Shown here in pieces: positions 1,492 through 50,172 of a stretch of DNA of 64,000 nucleotides. The notes below the pieces were generated by a model. That model had not been told where the DNA came from. It worked only from the letters and a program-made list of their open reading frames with translations, and ran no database searches. Numbering within the stretch: position 1 is the first letter of the stretch; each line of letters begins with the position of its first letter. Where the stretch lies: the sequence record NC_016163.1, one strand, 5' to 3'. A program made the translations under genes and the position numbers.

Positions 1492-2535
1492 ATGGCTAAA
1501 AAACCTGGCTTTCTGGACAAACTGAAAAAAGGCAAAACCGCTTCTAAAGAAGAAGAAACTCTGAAAAAGGGTAAAGCTGCTGTAGAAGACGATGAAGAGG
1601 AAGAAGAAGAGGAGGAAGAAGTTGCTCCTAAGAAATCTTCTAAAAAGCCTGTCCTGAAAAAAGGTAAGAAACCTGTCGTCGAAGAAGAAGAAGACGATGA
1701 GGAAGAAGAGGAAGATGATGCTGAAGAAGAAACCGAAGACGATGAGTCTGAGGAAGAATCTGATGATGAAGAGGAAGAAGAAGAAGAGGAGGAAGTAGCT
1801 CCTAAGAAATCTTCTAAGAAATCTCTTCCTGTTAAGAAAGGTAAAAAAGCTCCTGTCGTTGAAGACGACGAGGAAGAAGAAGAGGAAGACTCCGAAGAGG
1901 AGGAAGAAGATGATGAAGAGGAGGAAGTAGCTCCTAAGAAATCTTCTAAGAAAGTAGCTCCTAAAAAAGCTGCTGCTCCTGCTAAGAAAGCCGCTAAGAA
2001 ATCTAAAGCTTCCGATGATGAAGAGGAAGATGAAGAAGAATCTAACGGTGGTAAACCTCTCTTCGGCGGTAAAGCTAAGAAAGCTGCAACTCTGCGTACT
2101 CCGAAAGAAGGCGCAACAATGCCGCGTGAAAATATCATTTCCATGATCGCTGAAAAGCTGGATTGCACTAAAGCTGAAGCAAAAACTGCTCTGGTTGGTA
2201 TTGAAGAAGTCCTGAAAGAAGTTGGTGAACAATACTCCTTCCGCTTCATGGATTCCAACTTCCGTCGTCGTGTAGTTAATACTCGCGATTACAAAGGTGC
2301 AGGTGGTCTGACTGAACGTGTATCTAGCGATGTTGCTGCTATGACTACTCGTGTCGAATCCCACGTTTCCCTGAAAGGCGAAGTAACTTACGATCGTCGT
2401 ACCATTCGTGGTGTTGGCGAAGGTGATGACTTCCGTGAAGGTAACATGGTTAATGGTAAATTCGTAGCTGGTACCTGGGATGAAGAAGGTAACTTCACTC
2501 CATCTGAAAAGAAAGTCAAAAAAGCTAAAAAATAA
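1492..2535 (+). CDS. HU/IHF-like DNA-binding protein with ~200-aa acidic/basic disordered N-terminus
   Basis: AAGGA RBS; host-optimal codons; alternating E/D runs and APKKSSKK blocks, then MPRENIISMIAEKLDCTKAEAKTALVGIEEVLKE resembling HU helices 1-2. Confidence 0.7.
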   Translation: MAKKPGFLDKLKKGKTASKEEETLKKGKAAVEDDEEEEEEEEEVAPKKSSKKPVLKKGKKPVVEEEEDDEEEEEDDAEEETEDDESEEESDDEEEEEEEEEVAPKKSSKKSLPVKKGKKAPVVEDDEEEEEEDSEEEEEDDEEEEVAPKKSSKKVAPKKAAAPAKKAAKKSKASDDEEEDEEESNGGKPLFGGKAKKAATLRTPKEGATMPRENIISMIAEKLDCTKAEAKTALVGIEEVLKEVGEQYSFRFMDSNFRRRVVNTRDYKGAGGLTERVSSDVAAMTTRVESHVSLKGEVTYDRRTIRGVGEGDDFREGNMVNGKFVAGTWDEEGNFTPSEKKVKKAKK

Positions 2536-2633
2536 TATTGACTAATAGTTAATATTAGATAAAGATTCCCCATAACGTTTAAAAGCGTTATGGGGATCCT
2601 TCAATATTATTTTTATATAAGAGGCTAAGAGAA

Positions 2634-4445
2634 TTGGAAACTATAGATCTCAACTTCGTCAATAATAAGAATCCAGAAGAAGTTTTTGAAATCACTGACG
2701 GATTGATTGAAATCTTCCGTGATGATTGGCATAGAGCCTTTGAACAAGTAAAGATTAAAATTAAAAAAGAAACTAAGGTTATCAACCTTAACTCACTGTT
2801 CACTGGTCTTATCTATTCAACTACAAGATTCCCTTTAGATAGAGAACTGACAGTTGATGATTTAGTACTGGACTTAACATCTGGTGTAAATGAAAATATT
2901 GCTAACTATTTAGATGATACTATCTTAGAATTCACTAAGCAAGATGGTGATATTTCAGAGCTGTCATTATTCATTAGTAAGGCACTTTCCAGAGCAGCTA
3001 GTTATAGTTGGAATATTAACCACTTCCGTGGTAATACTATTAATATTTATGATCTCATTAAACTCATGCAAGAGAATCCTGATCTGCGTAAGATCATTAA
3101 CTTTGAGAGCAATGAGAATCTACAGTTCGCTGAAATTGAGTCAAGCGTAGAAGAGCAAACTAAAAAACTTGTAAAAATTCTACGTTCCAAAGAAGTTGAC
3201 TCATGTTTTAAAAATATCATTCCATCTGTATCTATCAAGCAGTTCCAACAGGTATTTGTCAATATTTCTCTTAAGCCAGACTTGTATGGTATCATTATTA
3301 GTAAACCAATTAATACAAGTTTCTTTAGAGGTATGCGTAATAGTACTGATTACTATATCAACGCTCAAGGTGCCCGTAAAGCGCTTGTAACTAACGCAAC
3401 AAGTGTTAGGTCTGCTGGTTATCTTGCTCGTAAGCTCATTCTTCTTTGTCTTGGTACTCAACTCGATAGAGAAGTGGAAGATTGCGGAACTAATAATCTC
3501 ATTGAACTTAAACTTGATAATAAAGATCAAGCTAAACGTTTTACAAATAGTTTCTATAAGCTTAAACCTAGTGATAAGAAATTGTCATTGGTTACTAATA
3601 AAAACTACATGGATATTGTAGGTAAAACAGTACACTTCCGCTCTCCAATTACATGTAAATTAGGGGATGGTAAAATCTGTAAAACCTGCTATGGACATTT
3701 GTCTCATACTAATAATTTCCATATTGGCATTTCAGCTATACTGGTTCTATGTAATCAACTTATTCAACGTCTACTGTCGTCTAAACACCTATTACAAGTC
3801 TCAACTGAAAAGATTGAACTTGATGAGACAATTAGCAAATACTTCTATGTAGATAAAGATATCTTAGTTGCAAAAGAGACTTTCAAATTGTCTCTTACTG
3901 AGGTAACTGAAGCTCATAACGCTAAGCAAGTTCATGGAATTAAAATTGTAGATGAGTCTGATGAGATATTAGATTATCAGTTCTTGGATATGGAAGTATT
4001 CGATTCTATCATTTCTGAGAATTTAGATAAAGACAATTCTATAGATGTTGAACCAAATCAGCCTATTTTCAAATTTAACGTTGAGAATACTGAGATTTCT
4101 GCTCCACTTAAAAAGCTATTATCTTTGATCGAATCTGAGGTAGAGCTTAACAAACGTTCTTCAGTTAATGAATTACTTAAAGATTTAATTGATCTCTTGA
4201 ACTTATCAGGTATTCGTTTATCTGCTACAGGTCTTCAGATTCTAGTTAAATCACTGGCTAGAGATCCTTCCAATATTATGGAAAGAACTACTGATTTGAA
4301 TGATGTATACTTCCTACGTGTTCATAATGCCATTCTTAACAGTAAATCATTGTCTATCGGTTTAGCATACGAACGTTTAAAACTTCAATTAGAATCGAAT
4401 ATCTTTGATAAGACAGAGTCTTCTGTCTTGGATGTACTTTTCTAA
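2634..4445 (+). CDS. Multisubunit RNA polymerase beta-prime C-terminal subunit (probably non-virion RNAP)
   Basis: Bridge helix YYINAQGARKAL...SAGYLARKL, EDCGT, Zn site RSPITC..KICKTCYG, trigger-loop region NQLIQRLLSSKH. Confidence 0.9.
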   Translation: METIDLNFVNNKNPEEVFEITDGLIEIFRDDWHRAFEQVKIKIKKETKVINLNSLFTGLIYSTTRFPLDRELTVDDLVLDLTSGVNENIANYLDDTILEFTKQDGDISELSLFISKALSRAASYSWNINHFRGNTINIYDLIKLMQENPDLRKIINFESNENLQFAEIESSVEEQTKKLVKILRSKEVDSCFKNIIPSVSIKQFQQVFVNISLKPDLYGIIISKPINTSFFRGMRNSTDYYINAQGARKALVTNATSVRSAGYLARKLILLCLGTQLDREVEDCGTNNLIELKLDNKDQAKRFTNSFYKLKPSDKKLSLVTNKNYMDIVGKTVHFRSPITCKLGDGKICKTCYGHLSHTNNFHIGISAILVLCNQLIQRLLSSKHLLQVSTEKIELDETISKYFYVDKDILVAKETFKLSLTEVTEAHNAKQVHGIKIVDESDEILDYQFLDMEVFDSIISENLDKDNSIDVEPNQPIFKFNVENTEISAPLKKLLSLIESEVELNKRSSVNELLKDLIDLLNLSGIRLSATGLQILVKSLARDPSNIMERTTDLNDVYFLRVHNAILNSKSLSIGLAYERLKLQLESNIFDKTESSVLDVLF

Positions 4446-5219: not shown

Positions 5220-5480
5220 ATGCTTACTTTAAGAATTCTCAAGGATGAGAAACGCCCTTTTCATTTTAATGGTACTTCATTTAAACATACTGTAGAAGTT
5301 TGGTTCAGTGAAAGTGTTAAATATATAGCTAATCCTTTAAACGGTATGATGAATTTTTCAGTCAAGTACAAATTTGTATTGGATTCTGAAAAATTTTATT
5401 CAAAGGTAAATTATTTTGCCATTCGTACTGGTTATCGTAATAAAGTATATGTATTAACTATTAGATCTACAGGCTTCTAA
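5220..5480 (+). CDS. Hypothetical protein, 86 aa
   Basis: Operon packing. Confidence 0.65.
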   Translation: MLTLRILKDEKRPFHFNGTSFKHTVEVWFSESVKYIANPLNGMMNFSVKYKFVLDSEKFYSKVNYFAIRTGYRNKVYVLTIRSTGF

Positions 5481-5491
5481 CAGAAAGTTAG
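5479..5491 (+). promoter_or_regulatory. Putative late promoter AACA-N6-TAG driving tRNA cluster 1
   Basis: AACA-GAAAGT-TAG. Same motif at 7459, 9138, 10051, 12195, 17547, 17836, 19205, 20627, 22066, 22830, 32279, 33919, 50210, 51852 (+) and 38403, 47777 (-). Matches the AR9 late consensus AACA-N6-T(A/G). Confidence 0.75.
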
Positions 5492-5617
5492 AAATGAAAG
5501 ACTAAAGCTTCCATTCCTGACTCATTTAGTAATTTCTTAGCCTTTTTATAGGGATAATAACTTTTCATTATCCCTTCTTTTCATAAAGTACTTACGAGTA
5601 TATTATGAAAAGAATTT

Positions 5618-6042: not shown

Positions 6043-6120
6043 GGGCCATTAGCATAGTGCTCTAATGCAGCCAGCTCATAACTGGAAGATCACCGGTTGG
6101 AATCGCGGTATGGCCCACCA
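6043..6120 (+). tRNA. tRNA with CAU anticodon, probably Ile2 (lysidine type) rather than Met
   Basis: GGGCCAT/ATGGCCC acceptor with C4-G69 and C5-G68 (TilS determinants), CTCATAA loop, encoded CCA; atypical D and T loops. Confidence 0.8.
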
Positions 6121-6222
6121 TTAAATAAAATTTCCCATATCCTTCGAAAGAGGGATATGGGAGTTTATTTCTTTTTTATTCATATATAATTATAATAGAA
6201 TATAACTTTATAGGAAAATATA

Positions 6223-7965: not shown

Positions 7966-8143
7966 GTATTAATATTTTAAATATTAAAAATAACCCATAT
8001 CCTTCCAAAGAGGGATATGGGAGTTTTATTACAAAATGTAGCGGCGGTATAAATAAGCATATATTATTACCATGAAGTAGCATAGGAAGCTGACATAATG
8101 ATTATTAATATCATTTAAACCGTACGGTAATGGGGTATATAAT

Positions 8144-8873: not shown

Positions 8874-9133
8874 CTTTATTACGTATTAATAAATCTAGAG
8901 AGCATCGCTTAGAAATATTAGTAGAGTCTAAACGATTTTCTGCTTTAGCTGAAGCTGAGGTTCTATTATTACCTTTTTCTCGTAGATTTGAAACAGAATA
9001 TTTGTATTTCCATACTAGCTTTAAAAAATCTGAGAAACCTATAAGTCTTCGTTGCTCGCCAGAATTTGTAAATTTTTGTAACAAAAATACAGGATTCTAT
9101 GATTCTTCTTTAGAAGAACAAATTGTTTTCTAG
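8867..9133 (+). CDS. Hypothetical protein, 88 aa
   Basis: Overlap packing. Confidence 0.6.
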   Translation: MLTLLRINKSREHRLEILVESKRFSALAEAEVLLLPFSRRFETEYLYFHTSFKKSEKPISLRCSPEFVNFCNKNTGFYDSSLEEQIVF

Positions 9134-9137
9134 AGCT

Positions 9138-9150
9138 AACAAAAAAGTAG
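9138..9150 (+). promoter_or_regulatory. Putative late promoter for the ncRNA/tRNA island
   Basis: AACA-AAAAAG-TAG followed by AAATG. Confidence 0.75.
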
Positions 9151-9270
9151 AAATGAAACCTCCGGCTGTGAGCGCATCCCGATTCGGTTACTTTCTAGCT
9201 TCTTTCATATCCTTCTTATTGTTATGGTCTCTAGGAAGTGGGATAAATGGATTTTATCCCACTCCTATTT

Positions 9271-9390
9271 AGTATTTTTATTGTAGGGCAGGTACTTACT
9301 TTTAATCTACAGGAAAATCCTGGGGTTATCCACAGAGAGTATGCAACGTATTGGGCTATACATTGAAACTTGCCCTACAATAAAAATATT
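9271..9390 (+). ncRNA. Unassigned structured RNA B with 21-bp closing stem
   Basis: 9273-9293 pairs with 9368-9388 (one G-U); internal hairpin CAGGA-AAA-TCCTG. Confidence 0.65.
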
Positions 9391-9413
9391 TTATAACAAA
9401 AGAATTAGAAGAG

Positions 9414-9516
9414 TATTTAATGATACTGTATTAGGTTTTCCCTCTTCCTTTAAACCTAATTAAGCCTGGGTTGGTTAGCCGAAAGCAATAGTAACTAATA
9501 CAGTATCGATTAAGTA
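9414..9516 (+). ncRNA. Unassigned structured RNA C with pyrimidine-rich loop
   Basis: GATACTGTATTAG 9422-9434 pairs with 9495-9507; hairpin TTAGGTTT/AAACCTAA closes loop TCCCTCTTCCTTT. Confidence 0.65.
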
Positions 9517-9535
9517 TTTTTTTTTTAAGAATTTA

Positions 9536-9613
9536 GACTCGCTAGCTCAGTTGGTTAGTAGCGGATGACTGTTAATCATCAGGTCGCAGGTTCAAGCCCT
9601 GCGCGAGTCGCCA
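9536..9613 (+). tRNA. trnN: tRNA-Asn(GUU)
   Basis: GATGA-CTGTTAA-TCATC, acceptor GACTCGC/GCGAGTC, CCA. Confidence 0.95.
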
Positions 9614-9623
9614 TATTTATTAT

Positions 9624-9698
9624 TGTCCCTTAAATTAGTGGCTAGACAAATCCATTGTAAAATGGGCGGCACCAGTTCGATCCTGGTAGGGACAACCA
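9624..9698 (+). tRNA. Degenerate tRNA-like gene, anticodon ambiguous (GUA or UGU)
   Basis: Perfect acceptor TGTCCCT/AGGGACA plus ACCA and T arm ACCAG-TTCGATC-CTGGT, but unpaired D arm and 6- or 8-nt anticodon loop. Confidence 0.7.
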
Positions 9699-9699
9699 A

Positions 9700-10046
9700 A
9701 TTAGTCTTATTCCATTAAGACTTACAGACTTAGCTACCAGCTTGGTATCTGAGAGCCTTCTCCCAAGGTTTACCCATAGTTCTATTCGAATAAGGTGAAG
9801 AATAGTTCCGATATAATCACTTCTTAGGAAATGATTAGTGTCTCAGCAAACCGTATGAGACTGAAAGGGTTGAAATAAACGGTTCCTCTAAATTAATAAG
9901 ATTGAATATATCGATCTTAGTGCCAAAGTCGCCAGATACATACGGCATAAATAAAGAGGAGTAGACTAATCAACTACCCTTCTTTATATAAAAATTTCCT
10001 TGTTGAAATGGTAAGGAAGGTAGTTATGCCTGATTCGAAAGAATCT
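9700..10046 (+). ncRNA. Unassigned pseudoknotted RNA D
   Basis: Many short helices; H-type pseudoknot GTCTCA/TGAGAC with loop AACCGT pairing ACGGTT 9879-9884; long-range pairs TATCTG/CAGATA and GGCATAA/TTATGCC. Confidence 0.55.
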
Positions 10047-10060
10047 AAATAACAAAAAAA

Positions 10061-10305
10061 TAGAAGTCCTCGCTTCTAGATGACGGATCAATTTTTTGTT
10101 GTATAAGTCATTAAATTTGAGGTTTTGAGAAAAACTGAGGTTTTTGTCATTAGGCTCTTTACATTTTTGCCCTCACAATTTGTAATTACTTTGCCACTGC
10201 ATATCTTCTTTATGAAGAAAAAATCTACTGTCAGAAGTAGAAACATGAATTCCTTTCAGGCTGAAAGGTGGATGCCCTTATTTAGATAACTCTAGATAAG
10301 GGCAT
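10061..10305 (+). ncRNA. Unassigned hairpin-rich RNA E (own late promoter at 10051)
   Basis: Hairpins at 10061-78, 10080-111, 10113-181, 10252-68, 10272-305; no ORF. Confidence 0.45.
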
Positions 10306-10321
10306 TAACAACCCACGATTA

Positions 10322-10560
10322 CGGGGATGTAGTGTTTATTTTTCTAGGTAGTGAAAGCGTGCACCAGTAACTACCATGTTTACCTCCCACTAAAATGGTG
10401 AAGAGTTAGATCAACTCTTTACTAGGCTACATAGGTATGTAGGGTATTGGAGGTTAAACATTCTATAAATACCAAATGTTAAATTGGTGGAATGCCTATC
10501 CGAGATAACTATCAGATAGAATAGTTAAAAGGGCGTTAGAAAAATTTCACTGCATCCCCG
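10322..10560 (+). ncRNA. Unassigned multibranched RNA F (~240 nt)
   Basis: CGGGGATGTAGTG/CACTGCATCCCCG plus ATTTTTCTA/TAGAAAAAT closing helices; at least five internal helices. Confidence 0.7.
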
Positions 10561-10585
10561 TTCCCTAATTTATTAAGGAACGAAA

Positions 10586-10741
10586 ATGTCTGCTAGTAAA
10601 GAACTTGAAATTGATATCGATAGCGTAGTGTTTAATGAAGATGAGCTTCAAGAGTCCGTTAAACATAACGAAGAGAAAATTGATTCTCAAGAAGTAGTTG
10701 AAGCTTCCGATGAATGTGATGGCGGCGGCTGTAAGATTTAA
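10586..10741 (+). CDS. 51-aa acidic peptide ending DECDGGGCKI, like the ribonucleotide reductase alpha C-terminal redox tail (missed by ORF track)
   Basis: AAGGA RBS, ATG, in-frame TAA, family terminator at 10748; CxxxxCKI as in E. coli NrdA CESGACKI. Confidence 0.75.
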   Translation: MSASKELEIDIDSVVFNEDELQESVKHNEEKIDSQEVVEASDECDGGGCKI

Positions 10742-10909
10742 AAACTTCCCATATCCTCTATTAAGGGGATATGGGGTTTTCTTTCCTTCTTAAAAACGTA
10801 TTTGGTAAACCTTTAAGAATATATTATTTTAGTGATATTGGGTGTTAAAACTCAATGTTAAACAAAAACAAACACTAATTCTAATAAGCAATAAAAGGAA
10901 TACCACAAG

Positions 10910-20552: not shown

Positions 20553-20728
20553 GAGAGACGAAAAGTAAAGAGTTCTTGGATTATCAAGAACTCTCCCTAT
20601 TTTTCAATATTAAAAAAATTTTTACTAACAAAAAAGTAGAAATCAGAAACGTTAAAGTTTAGAAACCGAAATCTAAATAGTTTCTGTTTTACCCCTAATC
20701 ATAAAATTACACATTAAGGAATACCATC

Positions 20729-24457: not shown

Positions 24458-24571
24458 TCTTTGCTAGTATAAAATACCCATATCCTCTATAAAGGGGATA
24501 TGGGGTTTTCTTTACAATTTTTTCATGCATATATTATAAGAAAGATATCAATATTAACATGAGACCTGATA

Positions 24572-48561: not shown

Positions 48562-48911
48562 CATTTACATTCATCATAGTTCGTTAATCTATGACCGCTT
48601 TTTAAGCTGCTATATATTGCTATATAGATTAGACTATATCTTAAGTACATAACCTATTATGTACCTCTCCCCATTTCGCTTTAAAGGATTTTATAATTGA
48701 AGCCATTCCACTTCAATAACCTACCACTTGGCGCTACTCTACTTGCTTATTCACTTAGATTTCGGTCTAAGCTATGCTTTCGATAGTCGTTGAACCTTAT
48801 TCAATAATTTTTATATTATTTTAAATAATATAAAAATTCTTAAATCTTGGATGCTGATTGTCTCAATGAGAGTTCCAGCAGTTAAAGGAGTTTATAGTGA
48901 GCATCAAGTTT
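48562..48911 (-). mobile_element. Group I intron (350 nt, no ORF) in polB
   Basis: P1 AGTGAGT/GCTCACT with U-G; TGCTGG..TCAGCA P4; TTCAACGACTA and AAGATATAGTC P7; terminal G 48562. Confidence 0.92.
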
Positions 48912-50172
48912 ACTCACTTTTCATATTAACTCTAGGGCGATCTTCTGGAAGTACACCAGCCGCCTTAGTTAACTTATAGAAAACATCACCGATGAAATTA
49001 GTAATAAAGTAAGTAATTACAGCACCGATACTTACACGTTTTTCTTTAGTTAATTTATCAGGGTCTTCACCTGTTGAATCACAAATGTACTCAATAAATG
49101 GACGAATGTACAAGAATGTTGAGTCAGTATCTGATAACAGTACTGTTTTTCTCATCATTGCTTTTACTTTAGTAGTTTTATTTGAGAATGGATAAGAATA
49201 GAATACGAATGCTTTCATCAATTCATTCAATTCTTGAAGACTTTCTTTAATATCTTCTGGCGGTTTCTCAAAATTAAAATAGTTTTCTACAATTAGATTA
49301 CTTGTTACAAATTCTTCAATAGAAGGTAATTTTAAAAACTCCATTAAGTTATTCTTATAATAGAGCATTTCTCTAACTGAGGCAGTTTGACTTTTAACCA
49401 CCTTAATTACCATGTTTCTAATTTCGTCTGTAACTAGGAAGGTACATTTACCAAGTAGATGCTCTACAACATCATTAGTTGTTAAATCATCATTTAAAGT
49501 AAATTCTGGATCTTCCTCAAGATTACAGATATTATACATATACTGAGTAAGTTCATGTTCAGTATCAAATGTAAAGTTACCAGACATAAAGGCTTCAAAG
49601 CCTAAAATAGCGGAAATGATAATTTGCTGTCCGGTATAAGTAATTGATGGGCCGAGGTCAGGGTTAAAGAATATGAATGAACTTGCCCCGAATGCACCAT
49701 AATAGCTGTTAGCTAGAATTTTAAAGATGAGCTGCTTGATGTCAAGGAAATTATAAAGAGATTTATCAACATCGTTGATATGTTGAAGCATTTCCTTTTT
49801 AGTTACTTTACGAGCTTTAAGTAGGAACTCAAGGAACATTCCTGGAAGGTTTTCTTTCTTATTACGGTTATAGAAAAGAGTATTAAAGCCAGTAATGATT
49901 AATCGTTTATCTTCTGGAAGAACTTTATTGTAGACGACAATATCGGCTACTGTTGCGTCCGAATAAGTTTCCTGAACGTTATTATAGACTACTCCGTTAC
50001 GATTCTTCCAATCCTGCAGATAATCGCTTTTTAGTCTATTCCAATCAACTTTTTTAGCTTTTTTTCTTCCTAATGATGTAAGTTTTTCCTTTAGATCATT
50101 AAAAAAGAAGTCAAACGCTTTCTTTTCATTTTTAGTTAAACTTTCATAAGTAATCAATGTTATACACCTCAT
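48912..50172 (-). CDS. polB: Family-B DNA polymerase C-terminal subunit, exon 1 (probable TTG start at 50157)
   Basis: Motif B KILANSYYG and motif C SDTDS. Confidence 0.92.

Follow-up and report, generated by a model that had tools for sequence, protein, structure and literature searches.

Bacteriophage phiR1-37 is a jumbo phage of Yersinia with a genome of 262 kb, in which deoxyuridine replaces thymidine in the DNA. A stretch of 64,000 nucleotides from this phage, called the window in the following, was identified by BLASTN as positions 62001–126000 of NC_016163; all coordinates given here are window positions unless stated otherwise. The subject of this work is the gap between the genes g115, which ends at 9133, and g117, which starts at 10586. 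This gap (9134–10585, i.e., record positions 71,134–72,585) carries only three features in GenBank, namely a terminator, a gene for tRNA-Asn and a coding sequence (CDS) on the minus strand, g116, for 52 amino acids. An initial annotation of the same DNA had described the gap as the only long stretch devoid of open reading frames (ORFs) and as less AT-rich than its surroundings, and both statements hold. No ORF of at least 60 amino acids is present from 9134 to 10909 (1776 nt), the runner-up in the 64-kb window, which is the scope of this comparison, being a gap of 615 nt; the GC content of the gap is 0.34–0.40, compared with 0.24–0.33 across most of the flanks.

Natural variants of the locus were obtained from the 90%-identity cluster of g118, which had 12 members whose contigs were retrieved, and from one more contig, which was found by an exact look-up of g117. 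The total was 14 variant loci (designated by L and a number), with flanks 83–99% identical to phiR1-37. The gap is truly non-coding, since its small ORFs, including g116, are broken in the variants and matches to protein families were not found: ORFs of 54 and 40 codons in the gap contain stops or frameshifts across several variants, and Pfam and PHROG searches of g116 and the other small ORFs of the gap gave no family match. Thus, g116 is probably a spurious annotation.

The features of the gap, followed by related features elsewhere in the window, are collected in Table 1. On the plus strand the contents follow each other as D1, D2–D3, tRNA-Asn, a tRNA mimic, D4 with a relic of tRNA-Ser, and D5–D7, where D1 to D7 denote folded domains. 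The z-scores of the domains refer to dinucleotide shuffles.

Table 1. Positions of the features of the gap between g115 and g117 and of related features in the window.
Feature	Position	Strand	Remarks
Late-promoter-like copy 1, TAACAAAAAAGTAGA	9137–9151	+	AACA-N6-TA at 9138–9149; predicted start at A 9149
D1	9149–9280	+	Weakly folded 5' part, CU-rich linker, hairpin 9232–9266 with U-rich tail; z −1.8
D2	9281–9383	+	Three-way junction with closing helix of 13 bp; z −4.0
N7-spacer variant of the motif, TAACAAAAGAATTAG	9394–9408	+	Motif at 9395; weaker than the other copies
D3	9407–9523	+	Long hairpin, almost perfect stem of ~28 bp (15+13 bp), branched internal tip, U10 tail; z −5.4
tRNA-Asn(GUU)	9536–9613	+	Encoded CCA; called by ARAGORN; Rfam 58.5 bits over 9536–9610
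tRNA-like gene, tl	9624–9698	+	27.1 bits, below the Rfam cut-off of 29
D4	9700–10049	+	~330 nt; run of conserved hairpins; local helices backed by compensatory changes
Relic hairpin	9897–9921	+	9 bp; collapsed acceptor stem of tRNA-Ser(UGA)
Late-promoter-like copy 2, TAACAAAAAAATAGA	10050–10064	+	AACA-N6-TA at 10051–10062; predicted start at 10062
D5	10063–10181	+	Weakly folded, 96–99% conserved, tandem UGAGGUUUU repeat; z −1.2
g116, annotated CDS	10088–10246	−	52 amino acids; stops or frameshifts in L025–L028; RNA-seq reads essentially nil
D6	10182–10322	+	Four hairpins within a closing helix of 6–7 bp; perfect 16-bp hairpin 10271–10306; z −6.7
D7	10323–10559	+	237 nt, multi-branched, nine helices, closed by 12+9 bp; z −6.2
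g117 and surroundings	10560–10776	+	Hairpin at the ribosome binding site (RBS) 10560–10581; g117 10586–10741; terminator 10747–10776
Exact copies of TAACAAAAANNTAGA outside the island	20626–20640, 32278–32292	+	Upstream of g131 and g147
One-mismatch copy of TAACAAAAANNTAGA	33918–33932		Upstream of the tail sheath gene g149
One-mismatch copy of TAACAAAAANNTAGA	5478–5492		180 nt upstream of the first tRNA cluster

A blind sliding scan with segments of 150 nt gave a mean of about z −2.0 for the region, compared with −1.1 (standard deviation 1.7) for the whole window. The region is only moderately above the window mean; therefore, the excess of structure sits in discrete domains. Separately closed domains had been described in the initial annotation, and D2, D3, D6 and D7 are indeed closed (z −4.0 to −6.7); D1, D5 and the tRNA-like element were unremarkable by shuffle z-score. 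The closing helix of D2 can be extended to an inverted repeat of 28 nt (9266–9293 with 9368–9395). This domain is nearly invariant among the variants; its one-sided changes are compatible with wobble pairing, and double changes were not present. D3 is likewise nearly invariant and was not flagged as a canonical terminator in a terminator scan. Two alleles were found for the hairpin 10223–10240 of D6, which differ at most positions and both fold, and the A-run in the linker of this domain varies in length among the variants.

Compensatory changes were found in two of the domains. In D7, five pairs in three helices are altered on both sides and are still paired, and four further pairs have changed by way of G-U; 99.3% of the cells are paired, none of 500 shuffles reached the observed covariation, slid partners yielded only 0–1 pairs, and the analysis was repeated with ten sequences. 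The substitutions in D7 concentrate in three hairpins. In D4, six pairs are altered on both sides and 96.4% of the cells are paired; the covariation score was not reached by any of 500 shuffles, and the slid controls gave 0–1 pairs. Realignment of D4 with seven sequences gave the same local helices and different long-range pairs; since the two alignments disagree, the long-range closing helices of this domain were not relied on. As judged by these alignments, the folds of D4 and D7 are real and are conserved by compensatory changes. Covariation, a check named in the initial annotation, is thus present in D4 and D7, and the evidence is thin, since homologues are known only from very close relatives. 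The identity of 90–99% in the gap is in itself no proof of selection, as these are mosaic genomes, whose identity to phiR1-37 varies between 74% (g113–g114) and 100% (g119).

The G-U pairs in D7 (41 cells, or about 7% of the paired cells), and the fact that the minus-strand g116 has almost no reads, favour an RNA which is read on the plus strand. The G-U pairs also bear on a role of the inverted repeats at the level of DNA, for instance as a replication origin, as a packaging site, or as sites of recombination or homing. Such a role could be suspected because the non-coding stretch is long and rich in inverted repeats and because recombination is frequent in the region. In a DNA cruciform or on the opposite strand, however, the G-U pairs would be mismatched, and the one-sided changes pass through G-U intermediates; moreover, iterons or arrays of direct repeats are not present, and the gap is GC-richer, not AT-richer, than its flanks. 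Because of the G-U pairs and the lack of iterons, a function of the DNA itself is considered very improbable.

Two tRNA genes had initially been counted in the gap. One of them is a canonical tRNA-Asn, of which the variants possess a different allele (77–80% identical); the other is a non-canonical mimic, with a score of 27.1 bits against the gathering cut-off of 29 bits for the tRNA family of Rfam (RF00005), and was left uncalled by ARAGORN in three lineages. This tRNA-like element has an acceptor stem of 7 bp, a canonical T arm, A73 and an encoded CCA; its D stem forms one of four pairs, and its anticodon loop contains 6 or 8 nt, not 7 (UUGUAAAA). The homologues in L022 and L025 have kept the odd loop, with the triplet GCA as opposed to GUA in phiR1-37, and one acceptor pair has changed from U-A to C-G, all 51 of 51 cells being paired. 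A decoding function is doubtful, because of the odd loop, the almost missing D stem and the variation of the triplet between close relatives.

Part of the structure which was emphasized in the initial annotation turned out to be wreckage of lost tRNA genes. The arms of the hairpin 9897–9921 match the acceptor strands of tRNA-Ser and its 3' GCCA, and a full gene for tRNA-Ser(UGA) is present at the same spot in L023 and L024 (L023 904–993; 52.2 bits). Outside the gap, the annotated tRNA-Met at 6043–6116 on the plus strand scores only 34.9 bits; its T loop is irregular, and it was not called by ARAGORN. The counterpart in L025 is canonical, with 54.5 bits. The state of tRNA-Met is a further sign of tRNA decay in phiR1-37.

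Two of the variants, L032 and L033, are devoid of everything between 6170 and 10741, i.e., the HNH gene g107, the genes g108–g117 and the whole non-coding region. The missing block amounts to 4.6 kb, and its junction lies within a terminator cassette of about 44 nt (CCCATATCC...GGATATGGG), whose copies at 6170 and 10741 are fused (L032 2163–2206). The cassette is repeated in phiR1-37 at 6127–6170, 7987–8026, 10741–10784 and 24468–24513, and resembles the promoter/stem-loop cassettes of T4-type phages which mediate the shuffling of modules. The gap lies in an accessory, mosaic and dispensable island of 4.6 kb, which is flanked by repeated terminator cassettes.

Other variants have additional genes in the island, namely tRNA-Tyr(GUA), a second odd tRNA-like gene with an anticodon loop of 8 nt, and the above-mentioned tRNA-Ser(UGA). 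The second tRNA-like gene, which is not found in phiR1-37 (L021 3683–3759, L023 359–435, L022 1775–1853), was interpreted by ARAGORN as a tRNA with a four-base anticodon (ttaa or agca) or as tRNA-Leu with an intron of 3 nt. An HNH endonuclease of 238 amino acids is encoded between tRNA-Asn and tRNA-Tyr in L022 and L027 (PHROG 2081, E 1e-44 to 1e-52), and HNH genes of this group occupy differing sites of the island (L022 2071–2790, L027 3904–4620, L021 91–813). L022, L025 and L027 contain a truncated 5' piece of tRNA-Asn, followed by a complete second allele with 78% identity. Homing endonucleases have shaped the island. The sequence just downstream of the tRNA-like element in phiR1-37 flanks tRNA-Tyr in the relatives, from which it would follow that tRNA-Tyr was likely removed from phiR1-37 by a deletion; L021 has a degenerate copy of this gene.

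More distant relatives were recognized by the helicase g121, which is encoded 1.7 kb downstream of the gap and has metagenomic relatives with 42–51% identity. In these, a gene for deoxycytidine monophosphate (dCMP) deaminase directly adjoins the helicase gene at the site matching that of the island; neither homologues of g104–g120 nor tRNAs were found at these helicase loci. In a distant relative, L007 from an assembly of Proteus mirabilis, the genes for the deaminase and the helicase are separated by a radical-SAM gene (2297–3325), which occupies the place of the phiR1-37 island.

From these observations one could regard the gap as debris, composed of decayed tRNA genes and scars of homing endonucleases, with folds that are left-over tRNA stems and terminators. 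The collapsed tRNA-Ser, the lack of the relatives' tRNA-Tyr in phiR1-37 and its degenerate copy in L021, the sub-standard tRNA-Met, the HNH cassettes and the truncated copy of tRNA-Asn in variants, as well as the absence of the island in L032 and L033, would all fit. Against this, compensatory changes keep the helices in D4 and D7, the divergent patches are limited to hairpins which still fold, no tRNA signal was detected in D2, D3, D6 and D7 at E values up to 10, and the neighbouring coding genes diverge at least as much as the gap does. The compensatory changes make pure debris unlikely in the case of D4 and D7. This explanation is correct for at least one hairpin and is regarded as quite improbable for the gap as a whole.

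The initial annotation had also reported late motifs at 9138 and 10051 and a variant with a spacer of seven nucleotides (N7) at 9395. They are present, and other exact copies precede genes of the class LATE. The bare pattern AACA-N6-TA shows no enrichment in the window (57 copies versus 74 expected), and the N7 pattern is at chance level (2 found, 1.6 expected). Four exact copies of the extended form TAACAAAAANNTAGA, all on the plus strand and intergenic, compare with 0.02 expected for this pattern, which was defined post hoc. The genes g131, g147 and g149 (tail sheath), which lie downstream of copies outside the island (Table 1), are classed LATE in the published transcriptome of phiR1-37. 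Within the gap, copy 1 is invariant in all variants, and copy 2 is conserved in all of them, with a lone change in an N position; an identical form of 21 nt precedes tRNA-Tyr in L022 and L027.

In phage AR9, the non-virion RNA polymerase recognizes the motif on the deoxyuridine-containing template strand, with the last A as the start site (PMC5312081, PMC9209446). Applied to phiR1-37, this rule, AACA-N6-TA(+1), leads to the predicted starts of Table 1. A late consensus had not previously been obtained for phiR1-37, as stated in the study on AR9 (PMC5312081); TAACAAAAANNTAGA may be considered as a candidate for it.

Downstream of the gap, g117 encodes a very acidic peptide of 51 amino acids, for which a protein-family match was not found. 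Its reading frame is intact in all variants, with conservative changes, and the C-terminal SDECDGGGCKI is invariant. A small hairpin (10560–10581) covers the RBS of g117, and the end of D7 lies 15 nt upstream of it. The arrangement suggests the main rival explanation, according to which the structures act only in cis: D1–D3 would be the 3' untranslated region (UTR) of g112–g115 with a stack of terminators or insulators, D5–D7 would be a leader of g117 for stability or translation, and an RNA acting in trans would not exist. In addition to the position of D7, it can be argued that the tail hairpin of D1, 9232–9266, is the annotated terminator of the upstream operon, and that g117 is conserved and intact yet nearly silent, as would be expected for a repressed gene. 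Precedents for start sites which are hidden in RNA helices are known from T4 (PMC3014915). Several points do not agree with this explanation: copies of the promoter motif precede D1 and D3, not a coding gene; the covarying D4 has no adjacent gene to regulate; between D7 and g117 no terminator is present, and no known riboswitch class matches. A candidate pairing of D7 with the start of g117 (10416–10432 with 10586–10602) was rejected, as the variants alter the D7 arm without compensation. An exclusively cis-acting gap is therefore considered to be on the unlikely side. For D1 there are two alternatives, the 3' UTR with the terminator of the early operon g112–g115, or a small RNA of about 125 nt, which extends from promoter to terminator; the last 520 nt may be no more than a leader of g117. 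A leaderless membrane peptide of 39 amino acids, encoded in D1, is unlikely: the ATG of the 39-codon ORF is gone in L021 and the changes are mostly non-synonymous.

Searches against known families gave little apart from tRNA. In the region 8900–10900, Rfam at E values up to 10 yielded no meaningful score except for tRNA; the best other scores were 14–28 bits, compared with cut-offs of 37–101 bits. No Rfam match to GOLLD, ROOL, OLE, HEARO or other large RNAs was obtained at the gathering threshold in the window and in six variant loci. Transfer-messenger RNA (tmRNA), RNase P RNA, signal recognition particle (SRP) RNA, 6S RNA, small self-cleaving ribozymes and riboswitches were not encountered either with Rfam (and, for tmRNA, ARAGORN), so that the initial statement that the gap shows no hallmarks of tmRNA, RNase P, SRP or hammerhead was borne out. 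A group I intron (RF00028) is absent from the gap according to Rfam; one is present elsewhere in the window, on the minus strand at 48610–49009 (63.4 bits, E 1e-13).

A BLASTN search of 50,697 phage records revealed, outside phiR1-37, only matches to tRNA-Asn. The helicase search in IMG/VR and a pattern scan for D7 likewise recovered only phiR1-37 itself, so that among the phages of GenBank and IMG/VR none was found to resemble the region; scans of JGI metagenomes for the closing helix of D7 and of GTDB genomes for the D6 hairpin gave 0 matches each. A search with the covariance model R1 of D7 detected neither a paralogue in the window nor a homologue in the loci of 20 kb from the distant relatives. 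The one match (L037) to a 19-mer of D2 in the JGI metagenomes was dismissed as due to chance, as there was no further similarity, and a sponge for CsrA was rejected, since GGA motifs show no enrichment. None of the domains is annotated or belongs to a curated RNA family.

Contigs from SRR3110971-79 (Logan assemblies) are 100% identical to the phage and span the whole gap; they break between the terminator of g117 and g118, near the promoter of g118. These data sets are presumably the nine infected samples of GSE77068, an assignment with which their number, dates and transcript-like lengths agree.

On balance, we lean towards the view that the gap forms the non-coding core of a tRNA island which is dispensable and quickly reshuffled and which yields processed structured RNAs, similar to the cluster of T4, in deoxyuridine-containing jumbo phages of the phiR1-37 type; this is considered somewhat probable. 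In the proposed mechanism, the non-virion RNA polymerase of the phage would initiate at the two AACA-N6-TA motifs (predicted starts 9149 and 10062), and read-through of the early operon upstream would contribute further transcripts. The precursors, comprising several domains, would then be cleaved by RNase P and 3'-end enzymes of the host wherever a tRNA or tRNA-like element occurs, and by RNase III at stems of 20–28 bp. Besides tRNA-Asn and the tRNA mimic, a small number of stable folded RNAs would be expected as products; D5–D7, the 520 nt behind the second copy of the promoter, could also act in cis on g117. The use of the promoters, the cleavage sites, the stability of the RNAs and any function in trans are what we infer here from the sequences.

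A number of observations weigh against this proposal. A promoter is not evident directly upstream of tRNA-Asn. Ten new RNA species are listed in the published transcriptome of phiR1-37, and none of them lies in the gap. The mean counts of g117 in that study were 3.9, 1.5 and 1.2, falling with time, in comparison to 110 for g115 and 34,486 for g118. A transcript from 10062 should reach g117, yet the counts are 1–4 versus 10^2–10^4 for the neighbours; this implies either low activity of the copy at 10050 in the conditions of that study, or transcripts from it which seldom extend as far as g117. The island is naturally missing from a viable-looking relative (L032/L033). A closing helix of the whole D4 was not robust, as it shifts with the boundaries of the alignment. 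As D1–D3, D5 and the greater part of D6 hardly vary, their folds are neither backed nor contradicted by covariation, and the homologues, 90–99% identical, are all from one narrow clade.

Structured RNAs of 100–240 nt are disfavoured by column purification and standard libraries. The total RNA of GSE77068 was purified on silica columns and standard libraries were prepared from it, a procedure in which RNAs below 200 nt are under-represented. The initial proposal of an operon with tRNA punctuation is sustained in one part, as tRNA and tRNA-like elements do occur between the domains, and is not sustained in the other, as the only published transcriptome lists no RNA species at this place and g117 is nearly silent. 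A late-promoter operon and discrete processed RNAs are therefore, for the present, something that we infer.

A bolder extension would be that one or more of D4 (~330 nt), D6–D7 (~380 nt) and the tRNA mimic represent a new phage RNA which acts in trans, either in the manner of GOLLD and ROOL, or as a decoy or substitute against host defences which target tRNAs. We consider this unlikely. If it were true, the odd loop of the mimic and the switch from GCA to GUA would be functional, the switch having occurred in the sole lineage without tRNA-Tyr.

Extra stable RNAs of phage tRNA clusters have been known since T4, and their purpose was never explained; the same applies to GOLLD and ROOL. The island of phiR1-37 offers a compact and tractable case, since the phage can be cultured on a laboratory strain of Yersinia enterocolitica O:3 and variants are available which differ domain by domain; the natural deletion in L032/L033 provides a ready comparison without the island. 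The island is also a hotspot for the gain and loss of tRNA genes and for the traffic of homing endonucleases. Should the RNAs not accumulate, the locus would still be a clear example of tRNA genes decaying into hairpins.

Among known systems, the tRNA cluster of T4 is the closest analogy. Its multi-gene precursors are processed by RNase P of the host, and it harbours the homing endonuclease SegB. The region also produces two small RNAs of unknown role (PMC3014915), RNAC and RNAD (species 1 and 2). Both phages thus have a dispensable tRNA region with structured RNAs. The domains of phiR1-37 are larger (up to 237 nt closed; D4 about 330 nt), a sequence relation is not expected, and the promoters would be of the deoxyuridine-dependent AR9 type; the stable RNAs of phiR1-37 are, unlike those of T4, predicted. 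Extra structured RNAs in a phage tRNA cluster are therefore of a long-known kind; the domains of phiR1-37 themselves are unannotated.

GOLLD and ROOL are large, elaborately folded RNAs of phages and prophages, which often occur beside tRNA genes. The gap in phiR1-37 is similar to them in having large folded RNAs next to phage tRNAs; in contrast, it has no match to their Rfam models at E values up to 10, is split by a promoter motif and tRNAs into smaller domains, and is confined to one narrow clade. The tRNA mimic shares with non-canonical phage tRNAs and mimics the intact half of acceptor stem and T arm, the encoded CCA and the location in a phage tRNA cluster, and differs by its anticodon loop of 6 or 8 nt and by the almost complete lack of a D stem. 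As to the promoters, phiR1-37 is the closest relative of AR9, which likewise has a deoxyuridine genome (PMC5312081, PMC9209446). The core motif and spacing are the same as in the late promoters of AR9 and PBS1 (AACA-N6-TA/G), and the copies outside the island precede late genes; phiR1-37 differs by the longer form TAACAAAAANNTAGA, by a copy at 10050 without detectable late expression of g117, and by starts which are predicted.

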